A stretch of 63,772 bases of DNA, filler included, from Octopus bimaculoides (lineage: Eukaryota): the NCBI RefSeq assembly GCF_001194135.2. It is 6 parts of 6 records of this genome, joined end to end, with 100 filler letters (N's around TTAATTAATTAA, not from the genome) between each part and the next. Parts side by side here need not be neighbours in the genome. Positions count along the whole stretch, not along the records: positions 38,223 to 50,571 come from NC_068985.1; 5 more parts are not named here. One strand, 5' to 3'. Below, piece after piece: positions 3,768 through 50,725 of this stretch; position 1 is the stretch's first letter; each line of letters starts with the position of its first letter. The notes beneath the pieces are model-generated. The model was not told where the DNA came from. It searched no databases and saw only the letters and a program-made list of their open reading frames with translations. The translations under genes were made by a program, and so were the position numbers.

Positions 3768-4678
3768 TGTGTGTGTCTGTGAGAGAGAGTGCAGTTGTGT
3801 GGATTTTATTGTATGTTTACGTGTGGGTATGTCTTGGTGGAGAAAATCATTAGACTTGAGAAAACGCCTCTTTCCTTCTCGCTTAAAAAGCGCATATATG
3901 CGTTGGAATTTACATGTGTGAGTGTGAGTGTGTGAGTGCACGTGTGCATGTGCGTGAGTATTTGAGTGAGAGAGAGAAATGTCGTGAGAGAGAGAAATGT
4001 CGTGAGAGAGAGACATACAATACATGAATATGTGTGTTTATGTGGTGAGGGTTATTCTGCGCATATACGTGCAAGTATGCGGCTCAATGCATTTCTCTGA
4101 ACATGTTAGCTTTATCTATTAAGCACTTGCTTAATCTAGAAGGAAGTACAATGCTTGTAGCCTTCGGTTACTCTCGAAACTCGTTGAGTTTTATGTGTTT
4201 AAGGTTTCTTTTGAAAATTTAGCTCGATTTGCAACCAAGCTGTTTTATGTTCTGTTCCACTGCGCGGAACATTGAGCAAGTGTATATCTATATATATCTA
4301 TATATATAATTACTGTAGTAGATTTATTGGACAAATTCCCTTAAAGTCCGTGCCCTGTCATGACTGAAACAATTTACAGATGATAATCTTTGAGTTAGGT
4401 ATTTACCAAGTACGAAGTAATAGTGAGAAATGATGGGTTGAATATGGAAGGAAACGTTTAAACTAAGGAGACAAAAAATGACGATTGAGGACGGAGAAAC
4501 TGTCTTGCATGGCATGCTAAGGAACCGATTCACCCTAAAGAAAAGCGGCCACGGAAGTTGCGGCACAAGAGACCGAGAGGGATGACAGCACGTTATATAT
4601 TGGCGTGTGAGTTTTTTTTTTTTTTTTTTTTGCAAATGTGCGCGTGTATTTCTGTGTATGCAATATGGGAATGTAATG

Positions 4679-4925
4679 CGGCGAGCTAGCAGAACCGTTT
4701 CAGCACGTCAGACAATCAGCTTAGCGCATTTCTTCCGTTTTTTTTTTTGACCTTCTGAGTTCAACTCCCACTGAGATGAGGTAACTTTGCTCTCCGTCAT
4801 GTTGAGGCCGATAAAATAAGTACCAATCAAGTACTGGAGTAGATGAAACCGACGGTTCCATCTCTCGAAAATTGCTGGCCTTGAATTCATTAATTGGAAG
4901 CGTCTTGTTCAGCGGGAATGTTGCG
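4679..4925 (+). mobile_element. Diverged SINE family A copy
   Basis: GCGAGCTAGCAGAACCGTT..GCATTTCTTCCG..TTCTGAGTTCAA..GATAAAATAAGTACC..GTACTGGAGTAGATG. Confidence 0.7.
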
Positions 4926-5265
4926 ATCTCAATCACTTACAAGCCATGGAATCCGAGTGACTGTCCCTTTTAGTCCTAAGGCTCGAAAAAAAAAGAAGAA
5001 AAAGAAAAAGAAAAGAGAGAATAGATATATCAATGTATGTTAATTAATGCATGTATATATACATATGATTATGAGTGCAATGTTGTATACGAATCAGAAT
5101 GTGCGCAGCGAATATATCTGTATAACTTTATATGATGCATACATACATCCGTGTATCTGTATGCGAGCGTTTGTGTGCATGCTTTCAGTTATATGACTTA
5201 TGTTCATACATGTTTCTAAATGAGGTGTACGTATATAAAAATATATACATACACAAGCCTATAAT

Positions 5266-5342
<77 letters not shown>

Positions 5343-6015
5343 TGTATGTATGTATATTCTCACAGATGCACATACATATATACGCACATGTATGTGTATG
5401 TATATTGGTGCATGTATATTTATGTGTGTGTGTGTGTGTGTATTTATTTCTACGTTTTTGTCTGTGTATATGTATGTATATTTTGTAAGTATATTTGTTA
5501 ATTTCTATATGTAAATACATCTTTGCGTGAGAGTGTTTGAACAGAGATTTATCCGCTCCAGTGTACAATTTATTTATACAGAATGTTTAACAAATGTCTT
5601 GATCTTTCAACAAATACGATTAAGGTGTGTTCTCTCTCTTGTATTTTCAATCTGTTCTGAGGGAGTGAGAGAGGGTGTTGTTTTATATCCGATGACAAAT
5701 TTAAACGCCCCGATTCAAGCAACAAATCTTGCTATAAATTTGTATGCCATCATCAGCCATTTGGGTCCTATTAGCTTTTGGATTCTTTTTACATTTTGTT
5801 TGTGTTTGTGTTTTCTTTTTACATTTAGGGATTTCGTTTTGAAGGAAAGATTTGGCTTATTTCATTTTTTTTTTCTTTCACTAGTACAAAAAGTCAAAAA
5901 GTATACATGCGTGTTCGTACGTGTGTATGCTCGCCTGTGTGTATGTGCATGTGTGTGCGTGTGTGTGTGTATTTTTGTGTGTGCATGCGTAAGCATGCTC
6001 GCATGTATGTATGTG

Positions 6016-6098
<83 letters not shown>

Positions 6099-6214
6099 TT
6101 AGATATTGCCGCCTTTCTATATCCAGGCTTTAACATGGTTTGAGGAACGACAAAACTGAAAACACATTCGGAAATACGAAGACCACCTTCTGAATCATGC
6201 AAATAGACCCCCAG

Positions 6215-6296
<82 letters not shown>

Positions 6297-6438
6297 GTAT
6301 ATGTATGTATATATAAGATATATACATATAGACAGAGAGAGTGCTAGAGAGAGGGAGAGAGGAGATATATATATATATATGTATAGGATATATACATATA
6401 TATATGTTATATACATATAATAAAATAATAATAATAAT

Positions 6439-6490
<52 letters not shown>

Positions 6491-6662
6491 GAAACAACTA
6501 GCATCATAGCATCATAATTTTGAAATATCTATAAACCAGTCAAAAGTTTGTTTATTTTTATGTTTTTTTTTTCATTTATTATTAGTGTTGCTTAATATGT
6601 TTTGATAAAATTGCTGTTTCTTTTCAGATATCATCAGGGAAAGGTAATAAAAATTCCTTAAA

Positions 6663-7468
6663 ATGACAAATCCGTCGGACTTTCAAAGAGGTCAAATTAT
6701 TCGTGCGTGTATGGCAGGCGCTAGCGTAACGAAAACAGCCGAAATGTTTGGTGTATCAAGAAGTACTGTCTCGAAAGTAATGACAGCCATTGAGAAAGAG
6801 GGAAAAACCTCCTGTTCGAAACAAAACTCCAGAAGAAAACCAAAACTTTCAGATAAGGACTATCGGACTCTTACGCGAATTGTTAGAAAGACAAAAGTAT
6901 AGCGACCAATATTAATGCAGAGCTTAATGAGCACTTCGAGAACTCAGTTTCCACAAAGACTGTTCGCCGCGAGCTGCACAAAGCCGGATTTCACGGGAGG
7001 GCTGCAATCAGAAGACCACTACTTTCGAAAACAAACGTTGCAAAGCATTTAGAGTGGAGTAAAAAAAACCCCTCCAGAATTGGTCCCTAGACCAGTGGAA
7101 GAAAGTTATTTTCTCAGTCGAGTCATCTTTTACCTTATTTCCGACCACCGGCCAAGTATACGTGTGGAGAGAGCCAAAGAAACCATTTGATCCAGACTGC
7201 ATTCTTCCAACAGTTAAACATAGAGGAGTATCTATGATGATCTAGGAGGGATACATCTTAGAAATCCGCCGGCCAAATGGCTTCCATTCATGGTTAAATT
7301 AATAGTCAAGATTATTTAACCTTTTAATCTGATCAAATTTTTCGTATGGTTGCGGAACTGTTTCCGGAGTGAAACGCAATCTTACAGGATGATAATGCAC
7401 CATCTCACACAGTTAAATGTGTTACTGAATGACAAGAGGAACATTCTAGTGAAGTTGAACATCTTATC
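6663..7468 (+). mobile_element. Tc1/mariner transposase relic, 3'-truncated
   Basis: MTNPSDFQRGQII..AGASVTKTAEMFGVSRSTVSKV (paired-like HTH), TVRRELHKAGFHGRAA.RRPLL, WKKVIFSVESSF (first catalytic D lost), PTVKH, LQDDNAPSH. Contains stops and frameshifts and breaks off just before WPxxSPDLN. Confidence 0.9.
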
Positions 7469-7571
7469 TGAAAAATTGTCTTCAATGCGGCTTTCCTTGA
7501 CACTCGAATACATTACACTAAACCGAAAATGGATAAAAACTGAATGCTTTTGGTTCCAACAAATCTAAAGT
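7469..7571 (+). repeat. Dispersed duplicate of 8988-9116
   Basis: TGAAAAATTGTCTTCAATGCGGCTTTCCTTGACACTCGAATACATTACAC..AACCGAAAATGGATAA..CTTTTGGTTCCAACAAA.CTAAAGT occurs at both sites. This copy has two internal deletions. Confidence 0.85.
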
Positions 7572-7619
7572 CACTGCACAAGCCACCAGTTATCCTTCAC
7601 ACATTCCGACGGGCAAACA

Positions 7620-7836
7620 CATGTCCATTGTGGTCTGTGTCGCGATCGTTCTGATTAGTGGTCGCAGCCATCATCATCATCGTCATTGATATAATTTTCA
7701 TCGTTGTTATTGTCTTCATCGTTGTCGTTGTGGCTGGCATCGTTGTTATGTTGCAGCAATGATTGTAGCGGTTATTATTGTTTTTGTTGTAGTGGTCGTA
7801 ACACTAGTCGTTATTGCCATGTTCACTATTATTTTG

Positions 7837-7871
<35 letters not shown>

Positions 7872-8040
7872 TGTTGTCTTTGTGTACCAATGGTCATAAT
7901 CCTCGTCATAGTCCTCGTCATAGTCCTCGTCATAGTCCTCGTCATAGTTAACGTAATGTTTATCATGCTCGTCGTGTCTCGCAGTAGTCTTCTTCGTTGT
8001 CATCATCGTGGTTGTTATGGTCGGCGTAACCATTATTTAT
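7620..8040. repeat. Compound trinucleotide mosaic including (GTC)n and 4x CCTCGTCATAGT
   Basis: Directly visible; the 12-bp unit lies at about 7900-7948. Confidence 0.8.
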
Positions 8041-8803
8041 AGCAGCTTTTACTTAAATTAGATTGATAACTTTCTCAGTAATTTGANNNNNNNNNNNNNN
8101 NNNNNNNNNNNNNNNNNNNNNNNNNNNNNNNNNNNNNNNNNNNNNNNNNNNNNNNNNNNNNNNNNNNNNNNNNNNNNNNNNNNNNNNNNNNNNNNNNNNN
8201 NNNNNNNNNNNNNNNNNNNNNNNNNNNNNNNNNNNNNNNNNNNNNNNNNNNNNNNNNNNNNNNNNNNNNNNNNNNNNNNNNNNNNNNNNNNNNNNNNNNN
8301 NNNNNNNNNNNNNNNNNNNNNNNNNNNNNNNNNNNNNNNNNNNNNNNNNNNNNNNNNNNNNNNNNNNNNNNNNNNNNNNNNNNNNNNNNNNNNNNNNNNN
8401 NNNNNNNNNNNNNNNNNNNNNNNNNNNNNNNNNNNNNNNNNNNNNNNNNNNNNNNNNNNNNNNNNNNNNNNNNNNNNNNNNNNNNNNNNNNNNNNNNNNN
8501 NNNNNNNNNNNNNNNNNNNNNNNNNNNNNNNNNNNNNNNNNNNNNNNNNNNNNNNNNNNNNNNNNNNNNNNNNNNNNNNNNNNNNNNNNNNNNNNNNNNN
8601 NATATATACATATATATGTATATATATTTGTGTGTGTGTGTGTGTATTTCTTTCGTCATGTAACACTTCTCTTATTGGTACTTTTGATGTGCCAGGTGCT
8701 CGAGCGATGAGAATCAGATTCATTTACGTACATATAAGCAAATATATATACATATACATGCATATATACATACCCACAGATTATATATATGTACGTATGT
8801 ACG

Positions 8804-8841
<38 letters not shown>

Positions 8842-38222: not shown

Positions 38223-39740
38223 CGAAAACGAATGGGAGGTGCGTCCATTCGTTTCGCGTGAACGTACGTCCGACCTTGGCGAAAACAAACGGTACGTGCG
38301 TCCGTTCGTTTCGCTTGAATGTCCGTCCGTCCTTGGCGAAAACGAACGGTACGTGCTTCCGTTCGTTTCATGTGAACGTACGTCCGTCCTTGCCGAAAAC
38401 GAAGGGCACTTGTGTCCGTTCGTTTCGCGTGAACGTACGTCCGTCCTTGGCGAAAACGAACGGTACGTGCGTCCGTTCGTTTCGCGTGAACGTACGTCCG
38501 TCCTTGGTGAAAACGAACGGTACGTGCGTCCGTTCGTTTCGCGTCAACGTCCGTCCGTCCTTGTTGAAAACGAATGGTAGTTCTTCCGTTCGTTATGCGT
38601 GAACGTACGTCCGTCCTTGGCGAAAACGAACGGTATGTGCGTCCGTTCGTTTAGCTTGAACGTACGCCCGTCCTTGGCGAAAACGAACGGTATGTGCGTC
38701 CGTTTGTTTCGCTTGAACGTACGTCCGTCCTTGGCGAAAACGAACGGTACGTGCGTCCGTATGTTTCGCGTGAACGTACGTCCGTCCTTGGCGAAAACGA
38801 ACGGTACGTGCTTCCGTTCGTTTCGCGTGAACGTAAGTCCGTCCTTGTCGAAAACGAATGGGAGGTGCGTCCATTCGTTTCGCGTGAACGTACGTCCGAC
38901 CTTGGCGAAAACAAACGGTACGTGCGTCCGTTCGTTTCGCTTGAATGTCCGTCCGTCCTTGGCGAAAACGAACGGTACGTGCTTCCGTTCGTTTCGCGTG
39001 AACGTAAGTCCGTCCTTGTCGAAAACGAATNNNNNNNNNNNNNNNNNNNNNNNNNNNNNNNNNNNNNNNNNNNNNNNNNNNNNNNNNNNNNNNNNNNNNN
39101 NNNNNNNNNNNNNNNNNNNNNNNNNNNNNNNNNNNNNNNNNNNNNNNNNNNNNNNNNNNNNNNNNNNNNNNNNNNNNNNNNNNNNNNNNNNNNNNNNNNN
39201 NNNNNNNNNNNNNNNNNNNNNNNNNNNNNNNNNNNNNNNNNNNNNNNNNNNNNNNNNNNNNNNNNNNNNNNNNNNNNNNNNNNNNNNNNNNNNNNNNNNN
39301 NNNNNNNNNNNNNNNNNNNNNNNNNNNNNNNNNNNNNNNNNNNNNNNNNNNNNNNNNNNNNNNNNNNNNNNNNNNNNNNNNNNNNNNNNNNNNNNNNNNN
39401 NNNNNNNNNNNNNNNNNNNNNNNNNNNNNNNNNNNNNNNNNNNNNNNNNNNNNNNNNNNNNNNNNNNNNNNNNNNNNNNNNNNNNNNNNNNNNNNNNNNN
39501 NNNNNNNNNNNNNNNNNNNNNNNNNNNGAAAACGAACGGTACGTGCGTCCGTATGTTTCGCGTGAACGTACGTCCGTCCTTGGCGAAAACGAACGGTACG
39601 TGCGTCAGTTCGTTTCGCTTGAATGTCAGTCCTTGGCGAAAACGAACGGTACGTGCGTCCGTTCGTTTCACGTCAACGTAGGTCCGTCCTTGGCGAAAAC
39701 GAACGGTATGTGCGTCCGTTCGTTTCGCGTGAACGTACGT
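38223..39740. repeat. CpG-rich 57-bp tandem satellite (interrupted by a gap) with an internal hairpin and a 3-monomer higher-order repeat
   Basis: Consensus GAAAACGAACGGTACGTGCGTCCGTTCGTTTCGCGTGAACGTACGTCCGTCCTTGGC. Monomer starts at 38452, 38509, 38793, 38850, 38907, 38964 and 39021 show a 57-bp period. Confidence 0.95.
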
Positions 39741-40619
39741 CCAGAAAGAAGCAGAAGACACTGGGACTGGTTTTTCATTCTCTTATTTCAAAACTGGCCA
39801 TATTTTTAAAATACAAAACATATTCAAGCCAGTTGTTAGCTGGGATAACGTTTTCAGAATAGTCAACAGTTATAAAGTAAGCAAATGCATATTTGTGATG
39901 GCAAAGTTCTATAAAGAGCATACATACTGTGAACTTCTTTTTACAGTTCATTGACCATGTTTAATGAAAAGTGATCTTGACCCATGTGACCTCACAATCA
40001 AAAAATTAAGGGAACATTCAAAATATCAATTTTCATAAGAGACAGTTAAAGTTTCAACGAAACATGTCACATCTAGTTTACAATGATAGCCATAATATAT
40101 TAAGCAAAGCGCAGGCATATCCGCAGATATTGAGGTGTATTATGTCAAGAGCCAGAAAAATATGTTGTTTCTAAACATCTAATTGTATAACGGACATTTC
40201 TGTCATTGTCAGGACATTTGAAACTGGTTAGGCTGAAAATACTGAAAGTTGATCAAGTTTGATACCTTTTTTTTTTTAACTAAGGAAACTTAAATCATGA
40301 ATTTTGTTTTCACTTTTGTAGTTGTATTTGCTTTAAATGGCATTGAAAAACTATATTTTCAAAGTTATGTCAAGCTCTGTACAGGGGTTCGCATTTGATG
40401 AAGTCAAATCTATCCTTAGAAATGGTGACACTACCAGAAATGTTGAACAATGGACATTTCAGTTTGTGAAAAATCTTGATGTATTAGAGCAAAATGGATT
40501 TCATTTTTGAAATCAGCACCCCCAAGTTACTAGGAAACATGTCTCCAACATCAGACAACAAAAACCCTGTTCCCCAGTGTAATAATAAACATAAGGCTTG
40601 AAAAGAGGCAAAAATCAAA

Positions 40620-42011
40620 TGTATGGATGATCTAGTGATACTGTTGGGGGAGGTTATGAAACAGATAGAAGAGATGGGCTATAAGTATTTGGGGATACTG
40701 GAAATGGTTAAATTGATGGAGAAAGAAATGACAGAAAAATTTAAGGTGGAGTACTTGCGCAAACTAAGACTGATCCCTAAGTTGAAAATAAGCGGACGGA
40801 ATAAGACTGAAGCTATCAATACCTGGACAGTTTCACTCCTTAGATATGGAGCAGGTGTAATCGCATGGACGGTGGCGAACTAAACAGCTTAAACAGAAAG
40901 ACAAGGAAGATGCTCATTAGATATGGGACACCCCACCCAAAACATGACTCAGACAGACTCTATGTACCACAAAAAAGAGGGGGAAGAAGACTAATTGGAT
41001 GTGGACATAGCATTACAGCAGAAGAAAACAACACAGCATGGTATGTAAAAATGCCACAGAACCACTATTATTGGAAGTAAGAAGGTCAGGCTTGTGTAGG
41101 ATGAAATAGTGCAAAGATAAAGCACTGTACAAGCAATTGAGAATGAATGAAACTGAAAATGGGTGGATAAAGAATGCCTGGACAATTTCATAGGGATATT
41201 GAAGATGAGATAGAGAAAAAAGTTGGCTGTCGATGACTAAAAGTGATTTAAAACCAGAAACGGAGGCTCTGTGCTGCCCAAGAGCAAGCATTTAGAACAA
41301 ACTACATAAAATACAGAATAGACAACACATCAGAAAGTGATAAGTGCAGAATCTGTGGACAAAATGGTCAAACCATATGGCATATTACCAGTTAATGTAT
41401 GCCACTAGCCCAGAAAGAATATAAGAGACGTCATGACAATATAGCAAGGATTGACAATTGGACACTTTGCAACAAGTATGGACTTCAGAGAGCAAAATAG
41501 TGGGAAGAACATAAACCTGAAGGCATCATCGGAAATGTTAATGCAAAGATCCTATGAGATTTTATGATTCAGTGCGACCATGAGATTGAGAATAGGAAAC
41601 CAAACATAGTCTTAATTGAGAAAGAAAGCAAATGATGCTGGATCATAGACATAGCATGCCCAGCTGACAACAAGGTATGTGATAAGGAAGAGAGAAAAGT
41701 CGAGAGATATGACAGGTTAGCTTGGGAGGTGAAGCAGTTGTGATCGATGAAAATGGTGGTAGTAGTACCAATAATTGTCAGAGCCCTGGGAACAGTGAGT
41801 AAAAATCTCGAAAAGTGCATGGAAAAAATAGGGGCTGCAATAAGGGTGAAGAACTTGCAGAACACAGCACTGCTTGGAACTGCTCGAATACTCCGGAAGA
41901 TGCTTGAAAAATAAGAGGTGTTACCTTAGTTGACTGGTGGTGAACAGCTGACACTGTAGTACATCTCCAGTGTTAGAAGGTGTGCAAAGGCAATAATAAT
42001 AATAATAATAA
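40620..42011 (+). mobile_element. 5'-truncated, decayed R4/Dong-type non-LTR retrotransposon (RT C-terminus, CCHC finger, restriction-like endonuclease) with (AAT)n tail
   Basis: Across frameshifts and stops: (C)MDDL at the YMDD box, YKYLGILE, AINTW..LLRYGAG, DRLYVP.KRGGR.L, EQAFRTNYIK..ID, CRICGQNGQTIWHITS*C (CCHC), KRRHDNIA, RKPNIVLIEK...WIIDIACP, VVPIIV.ALG, LQNTALLGTARILRKMLEK* (stop 41912-41914). Short 3'UTR, then (AAT)6 at 41992-42011. Confidence 0.9.
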
Positions 42012-42023
42012 CTATATCGAAGT

Positions 42024-42047
42024 TTAATATTTATGAAAATATTTATT
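42024..42047 (-). terminator. Polyadenylation signal candidates (AATAAA overlapping the stop codon, ATTAAA just downstream)
   Basis: Minus strand: GAC AAA TAA ATATTTTCATAAATATTAAAC. Confidence 0.4.
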
Positions 42048-45000
42048 TGTCATAATAAAAGAATGCAAAAGACTGACGTCCTGGAATAATTCCAAAAACC
42101 ATGAAAGAATCGTCTGAAATATGAAAACCAAGAACCTGGAAAACTTCATTGTCATCTTTCCTGAGAAGTAAATATTTTTGAATATCCTTCAATGTCAGAA
42201 TTTCAATGTCTTCAGATGTTTGCTGTTCAATATGTCCAGGTATTTGGTAAATATTGTTTTCTTTATCTGTTATATAAACACATTCACCAATTTTGGTTAG
42301 ACGAGGTCCTTGAATGTCATATTCCTGAAGATAATTTATTCCTTCTAATTTTATCCTCCTAACCAATGTCTTTTCCCTGAACCATTCCACAAAAGACAAA
42401 TTATCCAACCCTCCAAACTTGTTCTTCTTCCACTCCCTCTTCACAACAACAACATCACCAAAAGATGTAACCCCTACATCAACCACCACCTCTTCTCCCT
42501 CAAACCTTTCATATGTTCTCATCTTCACATGACACACTTCATATTTACATACCCCATCTTTGACATCAACTTTATCGACATAATAGGAGTCTCTAATATA
42601 ATGACCACCACACACGAGTTGATTGTCGTTGTATTTATATATCCTGTTGTAGTATTTCTCAGTTTTGATGGTTTTTAAACGACGGAGATCTCTGTTGAAG
42701 ACCATCATTTCTTTACCAAACACAACTATGAAATGATCATCTGTCCACTGACATATGTCCAGAGGTGGTTGTTGTGGTAGTTGTTTATGTTGAAGTATGT
42801 CACCTGTAGTTGTGCTGATTAATGTGACACTTTCTCTAAACATCAAGACACTGACATTGCCATCTAACATAATTAGTTTACTGTTCCAGTCCCTTAAGTC
42901 CCTGATGTCATAATTAACAGGTTCATTGAATGTAGGAATGGAAAGTGAGACCATTGCTGTTCTATGTGGCAGTCTTCTCACTGATATTTCATCATATCCT
43001 AACATAGTCTCTGCTATGTAATTATCACATCTCACCTTTAGTCTACCTTTACCAATTATTTTACCTGATTTACCTCTTCTTCTGCCTTTATCTCTATCTC
43101 CTCCACTGTAATTCAATTTACTCAATAGTTCCTTGTTCATCTGAGATGTAATGGAAGGGAAACAAAGACCAGAATCAAGATTTAATAAAGACACAGATTC
43201 CAGAATGTTCAGTTGGTCCCCATCAATCTTTATGCAATGACATTCAATCAATTCAATATGTACACACCAGTAAATATCCTCCTTTGTTCTCCATATTATA
43301 CCATAAGGTACTCGACTTTGCCAAACTTTATATTTCTGCAAATATTTTCGACTCAGTTGAAATATTTCTTTTCTTTTAGGAACTGTGGCCATTATGTCTC
43401 TTTTATGTGTAAAACACACACCACCAACAAAACTTGCAACATTTTGGTAACATAGTAACTTCCCAAATCTATTAAACATTTTAACATTTCCATTATTGGC
43501 TTTTTCACACACCACTATCTTTCCTTCATCAGAGATATCAATATCTTTTACTTGAACAGAGTATTTGTCTGTTTGTAAACGAGAAACAGAGAAGCTTTCT
43601 CGGTTGATCATGAAATATCCTTCCACATACAATTCATTCTCTCTTTTCCATTCCTTGTGGCTTCCAACGAACCTTGGTCCTTTACAGTTTATACTGAGGA
43701 AATATACTTCATCGTTATACATTCTTCTATTTAAAAATATTCCCTTGTATTCCCCAGTCTGTGTCAAACGCACAACATTTTTGTACCCAAACAAACCTAA
43801 ATCTTTATCCCACCCACCATGGATGTACAAATAGCTGTCATCAGTTGTCATCTTGTCTTCACCAATATCATACTTCATGTAGTGTGTAACTGTATGTAAA
43901 TATTGACCATCACTGTTGAAAAAAATGATGGATTTTCCGTTGCGAACAATGATGACATCAACGTTAACTGTAATATCGTCGATGACATTAATACAATTTC
44001 CATCTATGTCTCTCGTTAATAATGTTTCAGGTATGTCTATTTGTTTTATTTCATTCACAGTGAAATGTATTTCATCAATATCAATGAAATACAAATGACA
44101 TTCATCTCTTAACTTACTACAAACCATCTGATTGTTTGATAAAGAAGCGATACATTTATATTCATTTCTCGTCTGGTAAAGTAACACAGACAATGGGAAG
44201 TCTACTTTTAATGTCAACAGTTGGTATTTATTACCAGAATAATCCCCAGTCGTAATAACCAGTGTGTTTGACTTCCATTGACACATTTTAATAAATTCAT
44301 AAACTTTCAGTTTGAGAGAATCCAAAAGTTGACCGTCAAATGTGAATATCTTAATGCTTGTATTATCCTTGTCGCATCCCGCAATCAGGTTATTTTCAGT
44401 AATAACCAAACAGTCAATCTCCATCGGTTCTTCGTCTCCCGAACACTGAGGGAGATGAATATGTCTTGCTTTATCAGAAACTGTCAGATCCTGTAGATAT
44501 GATATAGAAGATAACATTTCACTGACACAAATCTTTCTTGAAAATATATCTACTAAGTCAAAATGAGTATTTAGTTGATTACTTGTAATGAGATCATTAA
44601 CCAACAAATTATGATCATTTATAGCAAATATACAGCTGTTCTCTATCAGATAAACAAATAATTTATCAATAGATCCACCATAGAGATTGGTGGGGCGTTT
44701 CACTTGGGACAGTAAAACACTAGGGTCCATCTTAATACTACAAAGCCGAGGACCACCACCACCACCACCACGTATTGTAGTTTTGAACTGAAAAGCTTTA
44801 CCCTTAATAACAATTAATAGCTTTCGTGTTTCCTTTTGTATTGATAATGATTTCACAAAAAAAGGAATATTAATTGTCTTAATTGTTTCAACTTGATTAT
44901 GATATTTAATGGCTAAAATATCTAAATGTGATGGTTTATCAGAATAACAAACAATTTCACCTTCACCCATCTTACACACCCGTACATAAGGCTGACTAAA

Positions 45001-47031
45001 CGATATACTTCTAATTGTCTTTGATAGGTTTCCGATGACCCTTAATTGTTTCTCTAGGGGTAATGTGACACCTATTTGATTAGAATCCCATCTACATATA
45101 TCTGTAGCTGTAGATGGCAGAGATAATCTGGACACAATGTCTCCTCCATTAGAAATGTATAATAGACAATCATTGTTAATGTCAGACACCACCAACTGTC
45201 CATTTGTCAGATGACATATTTCAGCAATGACAACTTTGTCATTCTCTTTATCTTTGAGTCGTAGATTTAGATTTCTGATATAAGGATTTTTCATATGTAA
45301 ACAACAGCCAGAGAAGTCATGAAACTTGTAAAAAAGAACCTTGTTGAGTTCAACATCCGGGACATAAACAGTTCCTTGGAAAATTGCAATGTGAGGGTGA
45401 ACAGAGAAAGGTACTTTCCACTGCCATTTAATTTCTCCATATATATCGTAACATATCACAGTTGATTGTCGCTTGAATAGGACATAAAAATAAACATTAT
45501 CAGAGTAGATGTCATGAGGGTAGCCATAGAATGGAAGGTATTTTTCAAAAAGTTCTTCACTGAATGTTGAATAAAAAACCAGTTTATTTTCCCTTCCATC
45601 TAAGACTACAAAATTAATTGGAGTTGCAGCAATGGTGACATTATAATGTCCCAGAGAAATTCTTTCTATAATGTCAATTTTGTCATCCTTGATCAATAGG
45701 ATATGTACCTCGTTTTTGTTTTTACTGGTGGTCAGAGCTAAACACTTATTTGATACAATGTGACATATTTTAATGTAATCAGTGTGGACATTTATTAAAG
45801 GGCCTTTGCTTAGTTCAGGACAGGTGATATACTGAAGTCCTTTCATTTCACGATAAAGGACCAGAAATCTGCTTGAGTTTATTCTACAAAAGACAGAAGG
45901 TGTCTCAAGGAAAGTTAAATTATTTTGGCTAATTATTTCCCCAGTATCAGTAAATAACATAGCTTTCTTATTCCTACAGACTATTAATATTGAAGATGTA
46001 GACATAGGTAGAATATTTGTAATGTTATAGCAATCTTCAATATAGATATGGTGTTTCAAACTGGGGGTATGTAGCTGGTGGTTGTATGACAGCTTGGGCC
46101 AAAAGTCTTTATTTGTTCTAATGGCATGAGTTATGCCAAAGCAGTCTATTACCAAAATGGTATCTTTACCAACAGATATAGAGCGGCATTTCCTGCCAAT
46201 GTCTCTCTTTGTCACACCACCTTTCGCTGAAATTCTATAAATAATATGTCCTTGGAGGACATAGAAATAGCTTTGGTACAGTGAGATTTTACTAGGGATG
46301 TCCAGCATGTAGGTTCCTACCTCCCATAACTGTTGACCATCCACATTATAACAAATTATTCTGTTTATACTGGAAAAGGATAATAAGAGTTTATTTTGAG
46401 CTCCTACAGCAATATCTGTAGGTGATTCTTTGGTAATGAATTCATATTTTATTCTATTTTCTTCCCAATCAATGCAGTAAATGGTCTTACCAAACATTTC
46501 TACACCTATAATTGTAGAATGTTCAAAGTAAGACACTAAATATAATCCAAGTTGCATCGTTTTGATCTTAAAACTTGTGGGGCTAATTGAAAGAATCATT
46601 TTCCGGAAGGGGATGGTTGCTAGAACCATGTCTTGACTGATTCTGGTGAAATCGGTCACAGAAGATGGGCAATGAACATTATTTCTGTCACCATCTCTTG
46701 TCATACAACATACTGTCATACAATTGTGGGAATATGTTACTAATCCTTCTTGTATGATAACAATATTGGATATTGTGTTGTCAATGTCTTTATCGGATTC
46801 ATTGATCTTTGCTTCTTTGGTCAGAACTGGCCAAACAGGCCGAAATTTTGTACTTATTTTTTGTGCCTCAATGGTCTTCTGCTGCCTTCGATTTATTTCC
46901 TTCTGTTCATGCTCTCCTTTATGTCTCTTCTCTTTTGACAGAGATGAAGTTCGTCTCTGTGACATCTCTCTCCTGGAATCATCATCTCTCCCATATCTAC
47001 AATTTTTTTTATCAACTGCTTCTTCATCCAT
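42043..47031 (-). CDS. Large single-exon-CDS protein (1662 aa): charged N-terminal arm plus six tandem NHL/TolB-like six-bladed beta-propeller-type modules
   Basis: 4989-nt ORF without stops in AT-rich DNA and not low-complexity. Start context AAAAATGG, with in-frame stops upstream in the same exon. Recurring blade motifs at about 220-290 aa spacing: PSSVTDFTRISQDMVLATIPFRKMI (aa~122), ETPSVFCRINSSRFLVL (~376), PSTATDICRWDSNQIGVTLPLEKQL (~639), FIKMCQWKSNTLVIT (~913), FVGGVCFTHKRDIMATVPKRKEI (~1201), QPPLDICQWTDDHFIVV (~1421). These resemble the C-terminal propeller of mollusc TRIM/NHL-like proteins. The fold is assigned by pattern only. Confidence 0.85.
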   Translation of the reverse strand: MDEEAVDKKNCRYGRDDDSRREMSQRRTSSLSKEKRHKGEHEQKEINRRQQKTIEAQKISTKFRPVWPVLTKEAKINESDKDIDNTISNIVIIQEGLVTYSHNCMTVCCMTRDGDRNNVHCPSSVTDFTRISQDMVLATIPFRKMILSISPTSFKIKTMQLGLYLVSYFEHSTIIGVEMFGKTIYCIDWEENRIKYEFITKESPTDIAVGAQNKLLLSFSSINRIICYNVDGQQLWEVGTYMLDIPSKISLYQSYFYVLQGHIIYRISAKGGVTKRDIGRKCRSISVGKDTILVIDCFGITHAIRTNKDFWPKLSYNHQLHTPSLKHHIYIEDCYNITNILPMSTSSILIVCRNKKAMLFTDTGEIISQNNLTFLETPSVFCRINSSRFLVLYREMKGLQYITCPELSKGPLINVHTDYIKICHIVSNKCLALTTSKNKNEVHILLIKDDKIDIIERISLGHYNVTIAATPINFVVLDGRENKLVFYSTFSEELFEKYLPFYGYPHDIYSDNVYFYVLFKRQSTVICYDIYGEIKWQWKVPFSVHPHIAIFQGTVYVPDVELNKVLFYKFHDFSGCCLHMKNPYIRNLNLRLKDKENDKVVIAEICHLTNGQLVVSDINNDCLLYISNGGDIVSRLSLPSTATDICRWDSNQIGVTLPLEKQLRVIGNLSKTIRSISFSQPYVRVCKMGEGEIVCYSDKPSHLDILAIKYHNQVETIKTINIPFFVKSLSIQKETRKLLIVIKGKAFQFKTTIRGGGGGGPRLCSIKMDPSVLLSQVKRPTNLYGGSIDKLFVYLIENSCIFAINDHNLLVNDLITSNQLNTHFDLVDIFSRKICVSEMLSSISYLQDLTVSDKARHIHLPQCSGDEEPMEIDCLVITENNLIAGCDKDNTSIKIFTFDGQLLDSLKLKVYEFIKMCQWKSNTLVITTGDYSGNKYQLLTLKVDFPLSVLLYQTRNEYKCIASLSNNQMVCSKLRDECHLYFIDIDEIHFTVNEIKQIDIPETLLTRDIDGNCINVIDDITVNVDVIIVRNGKSIIFFNSDGQYLHTVTHYMKYDIGEDKMTTDDSYLYIHGGWDKDLGLFGYKNVVRLTQTGEYKGIFLNRRMYNDEVYFLSINCKGPRFVGSHKEWKRENELYVEGYFMINRESFSVSRLQTDKYSVQVKDIDISDEGKIVVCEKANNGNVKMFNRFGKLLCYQNVASFVGGVCFTHKRDIMATVPKRKEIFQLSRKYLQKYKVWQSRVPYGIIWRTKEDIYWCVHIELIECHCIKIDGDQLNILESVSLLNLDSGLCFPSITSQMNKELLSKLNYSGGDRDKGRRRGKSGKIIGKGRLKVRCDNYIAETMLGYDEISVRRLPHRTAMVSLSIPTFNEPVNYDIRDLRDWNSKLIMLDGNVSVLMFRESVTLISTTTGDILQHKQLPQQPPLDICQWTDDHFIVVFGKEMMVFNRDLRRLKTIKTEKYYNRIYKYNDNQLVCGGHYIRDSYYVDKVDVKDGVCKYEVCHVKMRTYERFEGEEVVVDVGVTSFGDVVVVKREWKKNKFGGLDNLSFVEWFREKTLVRRIKLEGINYLQEYDIQGPRLTKIGECVYITDKENNIYQIPGHIEQQTSEDIEILTLKDIQKYLLLRKDDNEVFQVLGFHISDDSFMVFGIIPGRQSFAFFYYDK

Positions 47032-47111
47032 TTTTCTTGTTCAGCCCCAAGTGGCTCCTTTCTGACGGGTGTGTTCTTAAAGTATTTCCCGTCTAGCTTT
47101 CGATAGTGAAT

Positions 47112-47140
47112 CTATAAAGAAATACAAGAAAAACATGTAG
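47112..47140 (-). promoter_or_regulatory. Splice acceptor 80 nt upstream of the ATG (5'-UTR intron)
   Basis: Minus strand reads CTACATGTTTTTCTTGTATTTCTTTATAG|ATTCAC: a polypyrimidine tract plus TAG, with the exon starting at 47111. Confidence 0.6.
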
Positions 47141-47723
47141 CTTTGTGAAAATATTAAAGTTTGACAGAGATGAATACTTCATTATTTTAAATGTACAAAC
47201 AATAAATTTCTGTATTTCTGTCAGTGTATTTAGTTAGTCTTATTAATATCTAAAGACATTTTGGAGTGGGAGGGAATAATAATGATTAGAAATAAACATC
47301 TTATTACAATACAGTTTCATTAATTAACTGGTGTCTAAATATTAGCATTAATTATATTCACTGAAAATTATGTTTTCAACATCACAAAGTAATAGTCATG
47401 TGTGTTTTAGATTTATTTATCGATAATTAGTCAAAGAGATTCCCCTGCGCCAAAAGTACTCGATAACAAGACACTCTAAGCTATAGAGAAAATTAACTTT
47501 CATTGCTATACATACTATATCATGTCCCAACATACAGCAATCATGTTCAATCTTCGTTAACATGGAACAATTAGCAAAACAGACTTTATGTTTCACAGAC
47601 AAATGTCAGATACAAGACAGACTGAACATTTTGCTAGTTAGATGGAATATTAATAATATTTATGATTATATATACTAGAAATGATGTGACAGTCATGGTT
47701 GGTTTGGCTTCCAACATATTTAC

Positions 47724-47771
47724 CTGGATTAAGAAATATCAATAAAGCTGGAGATGAAACTGGTTCTTAAC
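47724..47771 (-). other. Candidate 48-nt non-coding 5'-UTR exon of the propeller gene
   Basis: Minus strand: TTTGTCAG|GTTAAGAACC...TTAATCCAG|GTAAAT, a canonical acceptor and donor pair upstream of the 47112 acceptor. No transcript evidence. Confidence 0.3.
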
Positions 47772-49344
47772 CTGACAAATGCTGTAAATCACTTAGCAGT
47801 TCAATATAATCCATACAATTATCATACACAGTATTTATAAAATTTGGAAAGCTTATCCAAAGATCGGGTTTAATGTAGTCACACTGATACACAGCGTGTT
47901 GAGACGATCATTATTATTTGTTAATGATTGAGATAATAAAGTTTGGTTAATGAAGAAGCCCAATTAATGAAAGTAAGTTCATCTTAATTATATTCAAAAG
48001 ACAATGTTTAGGTTGTAATGAGAAACAGGTGTTTGTATGTAAAAGGGGCCAGTGAAGTGTGTTTTGTTTTGGTTTAGGGGAGGAGATATAACTTGGTGTA
48101 GTTTATTATGAAGTATTGGGGGTTTAGTGATTTTGATTAGGAAATATTGTTGGGGTGTTTAATGATATTCTGCTGAAACATCATCATCATCATCATCATC
48201 AAATATATTCTCCACCTCCTACTTGGCCTATAAAAAAATGACTGTTAATCAATTGACCCCAGGAGGAATGAAAAGTAAAAATGACCTTCTTTTAGGTGTC
48301 TCCTCTCTGAATATACATCGACTAAACAACAACATATCTTTTGAAAAAAAAACTGGATAAGACTATGTTGTTTTTGTTGTTATTGTTGAAAACAAATTTT
48401 GTATATAAGGAAAACCAGATAATTGCAAATATTTCAACTGTAAAATTAAATTGGAATTAATGTTTATGTTTCATTTGTACCATTCTACTTAGTTTATTTT
48501 GGGGAAGAAAAACCTACAAAAACTCTCATAATAATTATATTAGACTTTAATCTAATTGTACATATACATACATGTATATATATGAATGAATGTGTATAAT
48601 ATATACACAAACAAACATGCACATATATATATATTTTTACATCCATACATATGTATGTATGATGATCATCATTTTACCCCCACTTCCCATGCTGTAATGG
48701 GTTGGATGGTTCAAAGAATATCTTGCCTGAAGTTACATTTTCTGGATTTCCTTCTAACACCATCCACTGCACAAGGTGCACTGGGTGCATCTTATGGGAC
48801 CATCGCTAGAGACGATTTCCATGTCCTTGACAAAACTAATGTTCCTCCTTGATCTTTGGGCTTTACATATACCTAGGGATTGGTGAGAAATCTAGGGTAA
48901 TAAATATATGGAAAGGAGGGGTTGAGTGTTGGGGAGAGACTCAGGTAGGTCCAGTAACATCCCTAGTTTCACTGGAAGAATGGTGAAGAGAAGAGATTTA
49001 CTGCCATTCTTTGTTCAGCAATAAGATAGTAGAGTAAAAAGAAGAAGAGAGAGTGATTGAGAGATGAAAGCTAGGGGTAGGGGTGATAGGGGCATGGCAG
49101 TAGGGTCACAGGTGTCAGTGACATAGGGGATGTGAAGAATGTGATATTGGAAGTGAATGATAAGTTATGTGTGTTAGAGGGATGAGTGATAGGAGTGTGA
49201 TTAATATCAGAGAGTAGCAAAAAAGGGTGAGGGAGTAGACTTTATATGCATACATACATTCATACATACATACATATGTATTCATCCATGCTGGAGCACC
49301 ACCTTTACCCAAGCAACATGTTATCAACATGATAGTTAATAGCT

Positions 49345-49935
49345 GGTGCAGTCGACTTGGTGCTTTGCTGCCTCCTCCAGTGTCTGATCGCAGTGAGCAT
49401 CATCCTCCAGTAGTCCATGTTTGGTGTCGGCTTCTCTGTAGGTCATTCAGACTCCCCATTGTGTCTTCGAAGGCCTAACAGCGGGCAGCAGTAGATGCAG
49501 AAAGAAGCACTTCTGCTGATTAGGGTGCACAGTGTACACCCGCCTGATGGCGCCCACTTCCGACGACAGCATTTTCTTTCCAGCCCTCAACGCGTGTTCC
49601 TTGCTTGCATCTGTTCCATCTATTGTGTGCCCAGATACAGGAAATGGGAACCTCAACATACAACAGTGTTCGGGCAAACAGATCACATTGGCATGATTTG
49701 AAGAAAGCTGTCAAAGTGGTTTCAGGTTGATTCGGAACTACGTTTCGAGCATTGTATTTTGTGAAATATACACACTGGCCATTTTCAATATGTACAGACA
49801 GATTAACTACTGTTGGATGGTGCTCGTGGATTTTGAAGCCTTCGTTAGAGGAAATATACCTGCTCAATTTCTATTGCTGAATTTCATCTGCTTGCCTGCC
49901 CTCATGTTCAAGTTCAAAAACCACCATATCTGAGC
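49345..49935 (-). mobile_element. Helitron Rep/helicase fragment (pseudogenic)
   Basis: DMVVFE...DEIQQ*..RYISSNE, HPTVVNLSVHIENGQCVYFT, PETTLTAFF..CQ.D.FARTLLY.EVP, IRRVYTVHPNQQKCFFL.LLL, GLLEDDAHCDQTLEEAA: characteristic RepHel inter-domain motifs. Confidence 0.85.
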
Positions 49936-50725
49936 CCTTATTGATGTATCTACATACATATTTAATACTCTTTATAGAGTTGCATGACTCAATATTAACA
50001 TGGGCCTGTCATATTTTAGACAATGGGTTGTAGGGCACGATACACCTGTTGCAAATTTCCATCCCTTGACCATTTATCTTTGAGATCGGTAGTGTTTAGG
50101 ATGATCACAAGAAAATGAATGGATTATTTCCCTTGGCTACGAAAATGAATGGGTTATTTCCCTTGGCTGTTATAGGAAAATATATTGGTTTTATATGTGG
50201 ACCCATTCTAAGGGCCTTAGCCTTCAAATTATACATTTTTTAGTAACAAACTGGACATCACTTTAACATGTTTGCAATGTTTCGCGAAAATTCGTTTACG
50301 AGTGTAGAAGGCAACTTGACACAAACGGACATTGAGACAACTTGCGTTTAGCTATTCTTTTTTTATTTTTATTTTTTTACCCCCCCCCCGTCCCCTTTAC
50401 ATTATATCCATTATTCTCTTGTTATTACACTCGCTACATTTTTCCACTTTTTATCTCACCCCTACCTACACGCACACATACCCACACACAAAAAATACAC
50501 GCACCCATACACACACATGTAAGCACACCTACCCCCAACACACCACATACACACAACACATATGCATGCACNNNNNNNNNNNNNNNNNNNNNNNNNNNNN
50601 NNNNNNNNNNNNNNNTTAATTAATTAANNNNNNNNNNNNNNNNNNNNNNNNNNNNNNNNNNNNNNNNNNNNACGAAGGAAACAGGTTAATGTTTAGTTAG
50701 AAGGAAGAAAGAAAAGAAGGAAATA

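Follow-up and report, generated by a model that had tools for sequence, protein, structure and literature searches.

A gene of Octopus bimaculoides with a single coding exon probably encodes a chain of NHL-like propellers and belongs to an unnamed octopod family

NHL propellers are single RNA- or protein-binding modules that end TRIM E3 ligases, which have roles in development and antiviral responses. Here, we describe an open reading frame (ORF) of Octopus bimaculoides whose predicted product consists almost entirely of such propellers. The ORF lies at 42043..47031 on the minus strand of a 63,772-nucleotide stretch of DNA, referred to below as the window, which joins six parts of assembly GCF_001194135.2. 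We consider it likely that this focal ORF is a host gene of an unnamed, octopod-restricted family of multi-NHL-propeller proteins derived from TRIM-NHL proteins, that it represents an N-terminally truncated copy, and that its product may serve as a scaffold. The NHL propeller top face binds RNA hairpins or linear motifs in Brat and LIN-41/TRIM71, as described in PMC4015489 and PMC5908797.

The octopod family and the TRIM-NHL proteins (TRIM71/LIN-41, Brat, TRIM2, TRIM3, Thin/TRIM32, and the cephalopod protein CAE1315789.1) have a homologous NHL propeller and a common blade motif, hydrophobic-x-D-x-x-N-x-x-I-x-h-F-x-x-D/N-G-x-h. The likeness to cephalopod RING/B-box/NHL proteins includes a cephalopod-specific GIC.W....V.VTLP blade, and both are predicted to be intracellular. 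Unlike TRIM-NHL proteins, the octopod family has no RING, B-box, or detectable coiled coil, and therefore no E3 ligase module; it has five to six tandem propellers instead of one at the C-terminus, and 1,650-1,900 amino acids (aa) instead of ~650-850; and it is restricted to octopods, with dozens of copies. Over the first 1,100 aa of the focal protein, Foldseek ranked LRP2/megalin highest; it likewise carries several propellers per polypeptide, six-bladed like those that the strand count suggests for the focal protein. However, LRP propellers are extracellular and separated by EGF and LDL-A modules, in proteins with a signal peptide and a transmembrane helix; the focal protein has none of these, and no sequence-profile relationship connects LRP2 to the octopod family. 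DDB1, CPSF160, and SF3B3, which also matched strongly in Foldseek, consist of little else than tandem propellers too, and act inside the cell as non-catalytic, multivalent adaptors. Their propellers are seven-bladed, WD40-like, and interdigitated, without sequence similarity to the octopod family, and they are encoded by universally conserved single-copy genes rather than by a lineage-specific expanding family. NHL propellers outside the TRIM context are present in NHLRC2 and teneurin, which have a single propeller each, combined with a thioredoxin-like domain or a YD shell, respectively (compare PMC6107167); neither protein turned up in our searches.

The family proteins are ~1,650-1,900 aa long and predicted to be intracellular; their N-terminal region is short, the chain of NHL-type propellers makes up the rest, and there is no enzymatic, RING, or B-box domain. 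The focal member begins with an ATG and runs through 1662 codons to a TAA stop, giving, from a single coding exon, a protein of 1662 aa (192 kDa, isoelectric point 8.3) that matches positions 3821-8809 of CM046605.1 (assembly GCA_001194135.2) exactly. The piece of the window that contains it (38223-50571) is the first 12.3 kb of this 127-Mb chromosome scaffold, and the focal ORF is its single long ORF. At a base composition of ~35% GC, stops account for ~7% of random codons, and the probability of a stop-free run of 1662 codons computed from base composition is ~1e-53. Thus, chance does not explain the focal ORF. The focal protein showed no hydrophobic stretch that would suit a signal peptide or a transmembrane segment. 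Basic Gly/Arg/Lys-rich linkers are present at aa ~752-761 and ~1309-1335, the first of which is replaced by poly-Arg and poly-Ser in paralogues. Below, paralogues and orthologues are designated by P numbers and loci by L numbers; the focal copy is also labelled Q, or query.

A Pfam scan of the focal protein returned no families at E<=10, and four relatives were likewise without a domain. When the single sequence was compared with PDB sequences using phmmer, TRIM-NHL matches were obtained at sub-threshold level only (E ~0.9), and a family profile was therefore needed. With the family profile, 12 of 12 matches were TRIM-NHL proteins (TRIM71, E 0.0044; Brat, 0.008; TRIM2/3; Thin; range of E 0.004-0.3), and the alignments fell on the canonical NHL motif. 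In hhalign comparisons, all six modules of the focal protein matched a profile of the cephalopod TRIM-NHL propeller with probabilities of 78.6-98.9%, and for each of the six modules this outgroup profile outscored every sister module. AlphaFold2, run on aa 50-1150 and aa 850-1662 with an alignment of 34 paralogues, produced all-beta models with four-stranded blades (mean predicted local distance difference test score, pLDDT, 66.8 in both). A Foldseek search of PDB with these multi-domain models placed LRP2 six-bladed arrays on top, followed by DDB1, IFT-A, and tandem WD40 proteins; since template modelling (TM) scores were only 0.1-0.25, the search backs a propeller chain, with NHL, YWTD, and WD40 types not separable by it.

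An earlier, sequence-only reading of this locus had proposed an intact protein of six tandem NHL-like propellers, perhaps duplicated long ago, without TRIM domains and possibly of a lineage-specific family. The NHL-like propellers were borne out by the PDB profile matches (TRIM-NHL only), hhalign of the six modules, the all-beta models, and Foldseek; the absence of TRIM domains by Pfam, which found no RING, B-box, or any other domain. A Tyr anchor predicted at aa 164, 419, 682, 958, 1243, and 1461 is located at exactly these positions. A second predicted anchor, D-I-C-x-W...I-x-V-T, was recovered by regular expression at aa 125, 378, 642, and 1423, while the copies at ~913 and ~1203 are looser and were seen by eye only. 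The number of propellers held in part: four were confidently modelled as full (aa ~85-312, 327-570, 853-1140, and 1332-1662), but module 3 was half-modelled and module 5 looks like a fragment. An honest count from the models would be four full propellers, one probable, and one partial, or roughly 30 blades. The age of the module duplication stood up well, the six-module layout being common to an Argonauta protein (40% identity) and a 30%-identical Octopus paralogue. Self-alignment of the family hidden Markov model related modules 3, 4, and 6 to one another at E=2e-6 to 1e-5 and module 2 to module 4 at E=4.5e-4; a pairwise module matrix gave similar values.

The modules are arranged as follows, all coordinates being on the minus strand. 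A basic, probably disordered N-terminal segment (aa 1-84, 46780..47031; AlphaFold2 pLDDT ~30 for aa 50-84) precedes module 1 (aa 85-318, 46078..46779; 23 strands, pLDDT ~77-87; hhalign 78.6%, E 1.7e-5) and module 2 (aa 319-585, 45277..46077; 23 strands, pLDDT ~63-88; hhalign 92.5%, E 5e-7). Together with module 4 (aa 851-1145, 43597..44481; 24 strands; hhalign 98.9%, E 3e-17, 216 columns), in which the canonical NHL motif IAGCDKDNTSIKIFTFDGQLL is found at aa 883, these modules have 23-24 strands at ~40 aa per blade in the AlphaFold2 models (pLDDT ~77-88), consistent with six-bladed propellers by strand count. Module 3 (aa 586-850, 44482..45276; hhalign 98.1%, E 1e-13, 118 columns) has three clear NHL blades at aa ~603-724, which contain the most conserved motif of the family, LPSTATDICRWD, followed by a Gly/Arg-rich loop (aa ~752-761) and a poorly modelled second half. 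Its aa 605-718 were partly modelled, with ~12 strands in three blades (pLDDT 50-64), and few strands were predicted at aa 719-852 (pLDDT <50). Module 5 (aa 1146-1331, 43039..43596; hhalign 90.6%, E 1.3e-6, over 73 columns only) is a partial NHL unit of ~2-3 blades (aa ~1150-1285) with motif VVCEKANNGNVKMFNRFGKLL at aa 1173 and the second basic linker after the blades. Its pLDDT is mostly <50-60: few strands were predicted at aa 1140-1239 (pLDDT <50), and a short run of strands at aa 1240-1284 (pLDDT 52-63) forms a blade fragment. The C-terminal module 6 (aa 1332-1662, 42046..43038; ~27 strands corresponding to 6-7 blades, pLDDT up to 94; hhalign 97.1%, E 5e-11, 240 columns) is the fastest-evolving part in the orthologue pair described below.

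Homologues of the focal protein formed 47 clusters. Their members, without exception annotated as "uncharacterized", belong to O. vulgaris, O. sinensis, or O. bimaculoides. They are 44-74% identical to the focal protein and 1,650-1,900 aa long if complete; the order of modules is the same, and the alignments are collinear across 97% of the query. Members of the family in O. bimaculoides include LOC106868082, LOC106873529, and LOC106882419. The last of these is a divergent member, which is 30% identical to the focal protein across all modules and >90% conserved among three Octopus species. Most O. vulgaris copies are located on one 29-Mb chromosome. A profile of modules 3-4 produced only 30 matches in 1.84 billion representative proteins, and the full architecture was seen in Octopus proteins and two Argonauta hians proteins only, in agreement with the lineage restriction suggested earlier. 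For A. hians, identity is 40% across 1,405 aligned residues (query aa 47-1406), and a second match covers aa 1409 onwards. The next matches after the family were cephalopod proteins in which Pfam recognises RING, B-box, and NHL; Acanthosepion pharaonis CAE1315789.1 scored 29 bits for NHL, the cut-off being 20. The results trace the family to a cephalopod RING/B-box/NHL (TRIM-NHL-like) protein, whose propeller was duplicated internally several times before the Octopus/Argonauta split. Gene duplication at the DNA level later enlarged the family, in large part within clusters on small chromosomes. The family evolves fast, orthologues being only ~85% identical. As far as we could determine, the tandem-NHL architecture, its separation from the TRIM half, and its amplification in octopods have not been described before, while the propeller fold is known and the unnamed sequences are public.

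Individual paralogues carry low-complexity inserts in loops and linkers (columns ~920-950, 1125-1165, and 1945-2090 of alignment A1). These include a poly-Arg followed by a poly-Ser insert in P0037 and P0039, a 40-aa Asp-rich insert in P0019, and long (EDQIS/F)n repeats close to the C-terminus of P0035 and P0038. Directly downstream of O. vulgaris P0010, the final 83-91 codons of the gene occur twice more in tandem (L005 21440-21697 and 21881-22138), with 66-67% identity to P0010 and 71-73% to the focal gene.

The N-terminus sets the focal copy apart. A conserved helical region of ~90 aa follows the variable N-terminus in 15 of 15 aligned full-length relatives, and the focal copy lacks it. The deletion junction, at 46884..46885 (minus strand), is clean and in frame, with 267 nt (89 codons) missing relative to P0010, whose aa 22-85 end at 46885 and aa 175-259 start at 46884. 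A tblastn search of the piece for the missing region, for example as an upstream exon, found nothing. The ancestral start (family start ME..NT.R...) persists as a relic at 47102..47104 (minus strand), which is now ATC. Between this relic and the new ATG there are a 2-nt deletion and in-frame stops; the present ATG (47031-47029), which is in frame and 24 codons further downstream, arose where the ancestor had a Trp codon (TGG to ATG). Both changes at the N-terminus preserve the reading frame. Given the new ATG and the missing helical region, we regard the focal copy as a truncated, isoform-like variant that is putatively active. An origin of the helical region as a relic of the TRIM coiled coil was considered and rejected, as its hhalign probability against the RING/B-box/coiled-coil part of cephalopod proteins was 0.4%.

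Despite these changes, the body of the focal gene has been constrained until now or very recently. The sequence-only reading had called the ORF intact and under purifying selection, and both claims hold: from its ATG on the frame is unbroken, and of 228 alignment columns invariant in the other 15 full-length relatives, 225 are kept by the focal copy, which is as good as any annotated member. The ratio of nonsynonymous to synonymous substitution rates (dN/dS) of the focal copy is ~0.3-0.5, the same as in annotated paralogues; for the comparison with P0008, the closest paralogue of the same species, the Nei-Gojobori estimate is 0.48 (dN 0.18, dS 0.38). Polarised by an outgroup, 60 nonsynonymous and 53 synonymous changes fall on the focal lineage versus 60 and 61 on the P0008 lineage (Fisher p 0.6), while the neutral expectation is 3.6:1. 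Along the whole focal branch, ~49 stop codons would be expected under neutrality, and an open frame has p <0.01 once neutral divergence exceeds ~2%, so any inactivation must be very recent. For the orthologue pair, dN/dS is 0.40, reaching ~0.8 in the C-terminal third; in the focal copy, aa 1-84 have dN/dS ~1. Sliding-window analysis showed no convincing patch of dN/dS >1, and isolated windows near 1 coincided with low dS. Between paralogues (focal versus L002 and L005), dS varies ~eight-fold along the gene, from 0.1 to 0.9, which suggests inter-paralogue gene conversion. In the comparison with P0008, aa 601-750 and 1201-1275 have a dS of 0.13-0.19, whereas aa 226-300 and 901-975 have one of 0.83-0.90.

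Several points weigh against the interpretation of the focal ORF as an active gene for a TRIM-NHL-derived propeller chain, and three other explanations were considered. As far as the protein is concerned, the Pfam NHL model (PF01436, gathering score 20 bits) stayed below threshold on every member tested (18.5 bits for the best member, P0052, and 7.3 bits for P0045); AlphaFold2 confidence is moderate, from a shallow alignment of paralogues only; blade counts were taken from secondary-structure strings of the models; a ligand-binding mechanism would be an extrapolation from single-propeller NHL proteins; and in the searchable literature, LOC identifiers included, no paper on the family or the architecture was found, nor anything usable on immune expansions of TRIM-NHL proteins in molluscs. 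The sub-threshold Pfam scores, the Foldseek ranking with LRP2 YWTD arrays, DDB1, and WD40 tandem propellers at its head, and two bacterial DUF5122 repeat proteins among the profile matches would suit modules of some other propeller class (YWTD/LDL-receptor class B, WD40, or DUF5122/SBBP), their NHL likeness being convergence on a common blade motif. We find this highly improbable. The sequence-profile matches in PDB are exclusively TRIM-NHL, the closest non-family eukaryotic relatives have a bona fide NHL Pfam match plus RING and B-box, and hhalign probabilities against cephalopod TRIM-NHL propellers reach 97-99% over up to 240 columns, whereas the Foldseek order was set by the multi-domain query (TM 0.1-0.2) and not by blade type. 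The bacterial delta-60/DUF5122 matches were set aside, as generic propeller blades whose scores add up over repeats. Even less probable, and largely refuted, is the view that the ORF is encoded by, or was recently domesticated from, a transposable element or virus, with copies made by transposition. The many copies per genome, the intronless coding sequence (a single exon in P0008, P0037, and P0039, and one exon for aa 8-1790 of P0010), the fusion of some database gene models to DUF4371 or C2H2 zinc-finger domains, and the transposon remnants on both sides in the window could be taken that way. However, Pfam found no transposase, reverse transcriptase, integrase, or capsid domain in the focal protein or four relatives, a viral structure library gave generic propeller matches only, and no inverted repeats, long-terminal-repeat-like sequences, or long direct repeats flank the focal ORF. 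Immediately upstream of the ancestral start codon of the family there is a 3' splice acceptor of a 5' untranslated region (UTR) intron, consisting of a polypyrimidine tract and AG (TTTCTTTATAG, 47112..47125, minus strand), which is common to P0008 and P0010. Upstream non-coding homology between the focal gene and P0008 spans 0.4-0.9 kb and includes a block at 48231..48636 (minus strand) that is 75-78% identical to the region 0.1-0.9 kb upstream of P0008, a candidate 5' exon or promoter. The loci of the orthologues P0037 and P0039 (O. bimaculoides and O. sinensis) are collinear at ~90% identity, neighbouring gene included, and family copies are 44-86% identical, not near-identical, and under purifying selection. 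The single-exon coding sequence, the conserved acceptor, the upstream homology, the synteny, and the lack of flanking repeats thus indicate that the family spread by gene duplication, not transposition, and favour a host gene over a transposon, a possibility that the sequence-only reading had named as its own potential undoing.

The remaining alternative, that the focal copy is a very recently inactivated or decaying paralogue, open only for lack of time since its losses, is unlikely in our estimate, yet it is the most serious of the three. The ancestral ATG is now ATC, with the 2-nt deletion and stops before the present ATG, and the conserved 89-codon region is deleted; the loss of both may mean that the focal copy is non-functional. 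About 1 kb of extra DNA (47106-48230), probably an insertion into the 5' UTR intron or promoter of the focal copy, separates the upstream block from the acceptor and has no counterpart in P0008, where the two are nearly contiguous. A decayed repeat ends ~33 bp past the stop, the normal 3' end perhaps being lost, and the locus abuts satellite DNA and an assembly gap at the scaffold end; both may have the same meaning for function. In addition, no orthologue >74% identical to the focal copy is present in the O. vulgaris and O. sinensis proteomes, even though the focal/P0008 duplication (dS 0.38) predates the species split (orthologue dS 0.18). It is the lost start and N-terminus together with this missing orthologue that make recent loss of function a serious rival. 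Against it, the new ATG keeps the frame at what was a Trp codon and the length of the deletion is divisible by three, the family-invariant residues are kept almost completely, the nonsynonymous-to-synonymous ratio on the focal branch equals that of an annotated paralogue and is ~1/3 of the neutral value, and decay beyond ~2% neutral divergence would have left a stop in all but a small fraction of cases (P(no stop) <0.01).

If the focal ORF is, as we think likely, an active member of the TRIM-NHL-derived family, each of its modules could, in the manner of a single NHL propeller, present a face to which a protein or RNA ligand binds. By analogy, the propeller chain would then work as a non-catalytic multivalent binding scaffold or sensor; in characterised proteins the NHL top face binds RNA or protein, and a chain of divergent propellers may therefore be a multivalent binding platform, for which the sequence-only reading had suggested RNA sensing or immunity as plausible roles. 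The basic Gly/Arg/Ser-rich linkers and the fast birth-and-death evolution would fit RNA or non-self recognition best. Recognition families under conflict typically show the traits seen here, namely RG-/RS-like linkers, lineage-specific expansion, clustering, raised dN/dS, and probable gene conversion; these are circumstantial indications of such a role. A more elaborate and doubtful scenario, to which we give less credence than to decay of the focal copy, is an octopod-specific intracellular recognition system: a TRIM-NHL-derived sensor array minus the ubiquitin-ligase half, in which each of the five to six divergent NHL faces might recognise an RNA or protein feature of its own, in viruses, transposons, or (edited) transcripts, and whose repertoire might be diversified by birth-and-death evolution, inter-paralogue gene conversion, and N-terminal variants like the focal copy. 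In this family, found in octopods only, it is the propeller by itself that has multiplied, to five to six per polypeptide, and the gene has been amplified to dozens of fast-evolving copies. This provides a natural experiment on the evolution of propeller arrays by internal duplication, gene conversion, and domain loss. Should the modules bind RNA or foreign proteins, the family would constitute a new type of multivalent recognition scaffold, and would be a candidate for a lineage-specific novelty in the immunity or RNA biology of cephalopods.

At the 3' end of the focal gene, the stop codon sits inside GACAAATAAATA (42040-42050, minus strand), where, as read by eye, an AATAAA polyadenylation signal overlaps the stop; the 3' UTR could therefore be very short, ending before the inserted repeat. 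The same end is overlapped in another frame by a 43-aa ORF (42024-42155, minus strand) that contains FIFQTILSWFLELFQDVSLLHSFIM and corresponds to the aberrant C-terminal end of P0021, a database protein (LIFQTILSWFLELLQDASLLLSFIM). This O. sinensis gene model probably carries a frameshift close to its end.

The DNA flanking the focal gene is made up of repeats and some unique sequence. The decayed repeat downstream, at ~40600-42010 (plus strand), has broken reading frames and ends in (AAT)n. On the other side, a GC-richer stretch at ~49330-49930 (minus strand) contains a 115-aa ORF whose translation includes VEVPISCIWAHNRWNRCKQGTRVEGW and VYTVHPNQQKCFFLHLLL. By eye, and only tentatively, the decayed repeat resembles the C-terminal part of a non-LTR (long terminal repeat) retrotransposon reverse transcriptase, and the 115-aa ORF resembles the part of Helitron Rep/Hel proteins that precedes the helicase. 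Pfam gave no match for three ORFs of the repeat and nothing significant for the 115-aa ORF, and the LINE-like (long interspersed element) and Helitron-like labels are therefore readings by eye only. Unique DNA lies between the decayed repeat and a 57-bp satellite downstream of the focal gene. The satellite (consensus CGAAAACGAACGGTACGTGCGTCCGTTCGTTTCGCGTGAACGTACGTCCGTCCTTGG, 38223-39742) comprises at least 18 copies at 86-88% identity, with a 497-N assembly gap inside. Chromosome scaffold CM046605.1 begins with this satellite, which may therefore be subtelomeric or mark a misjoined contig.

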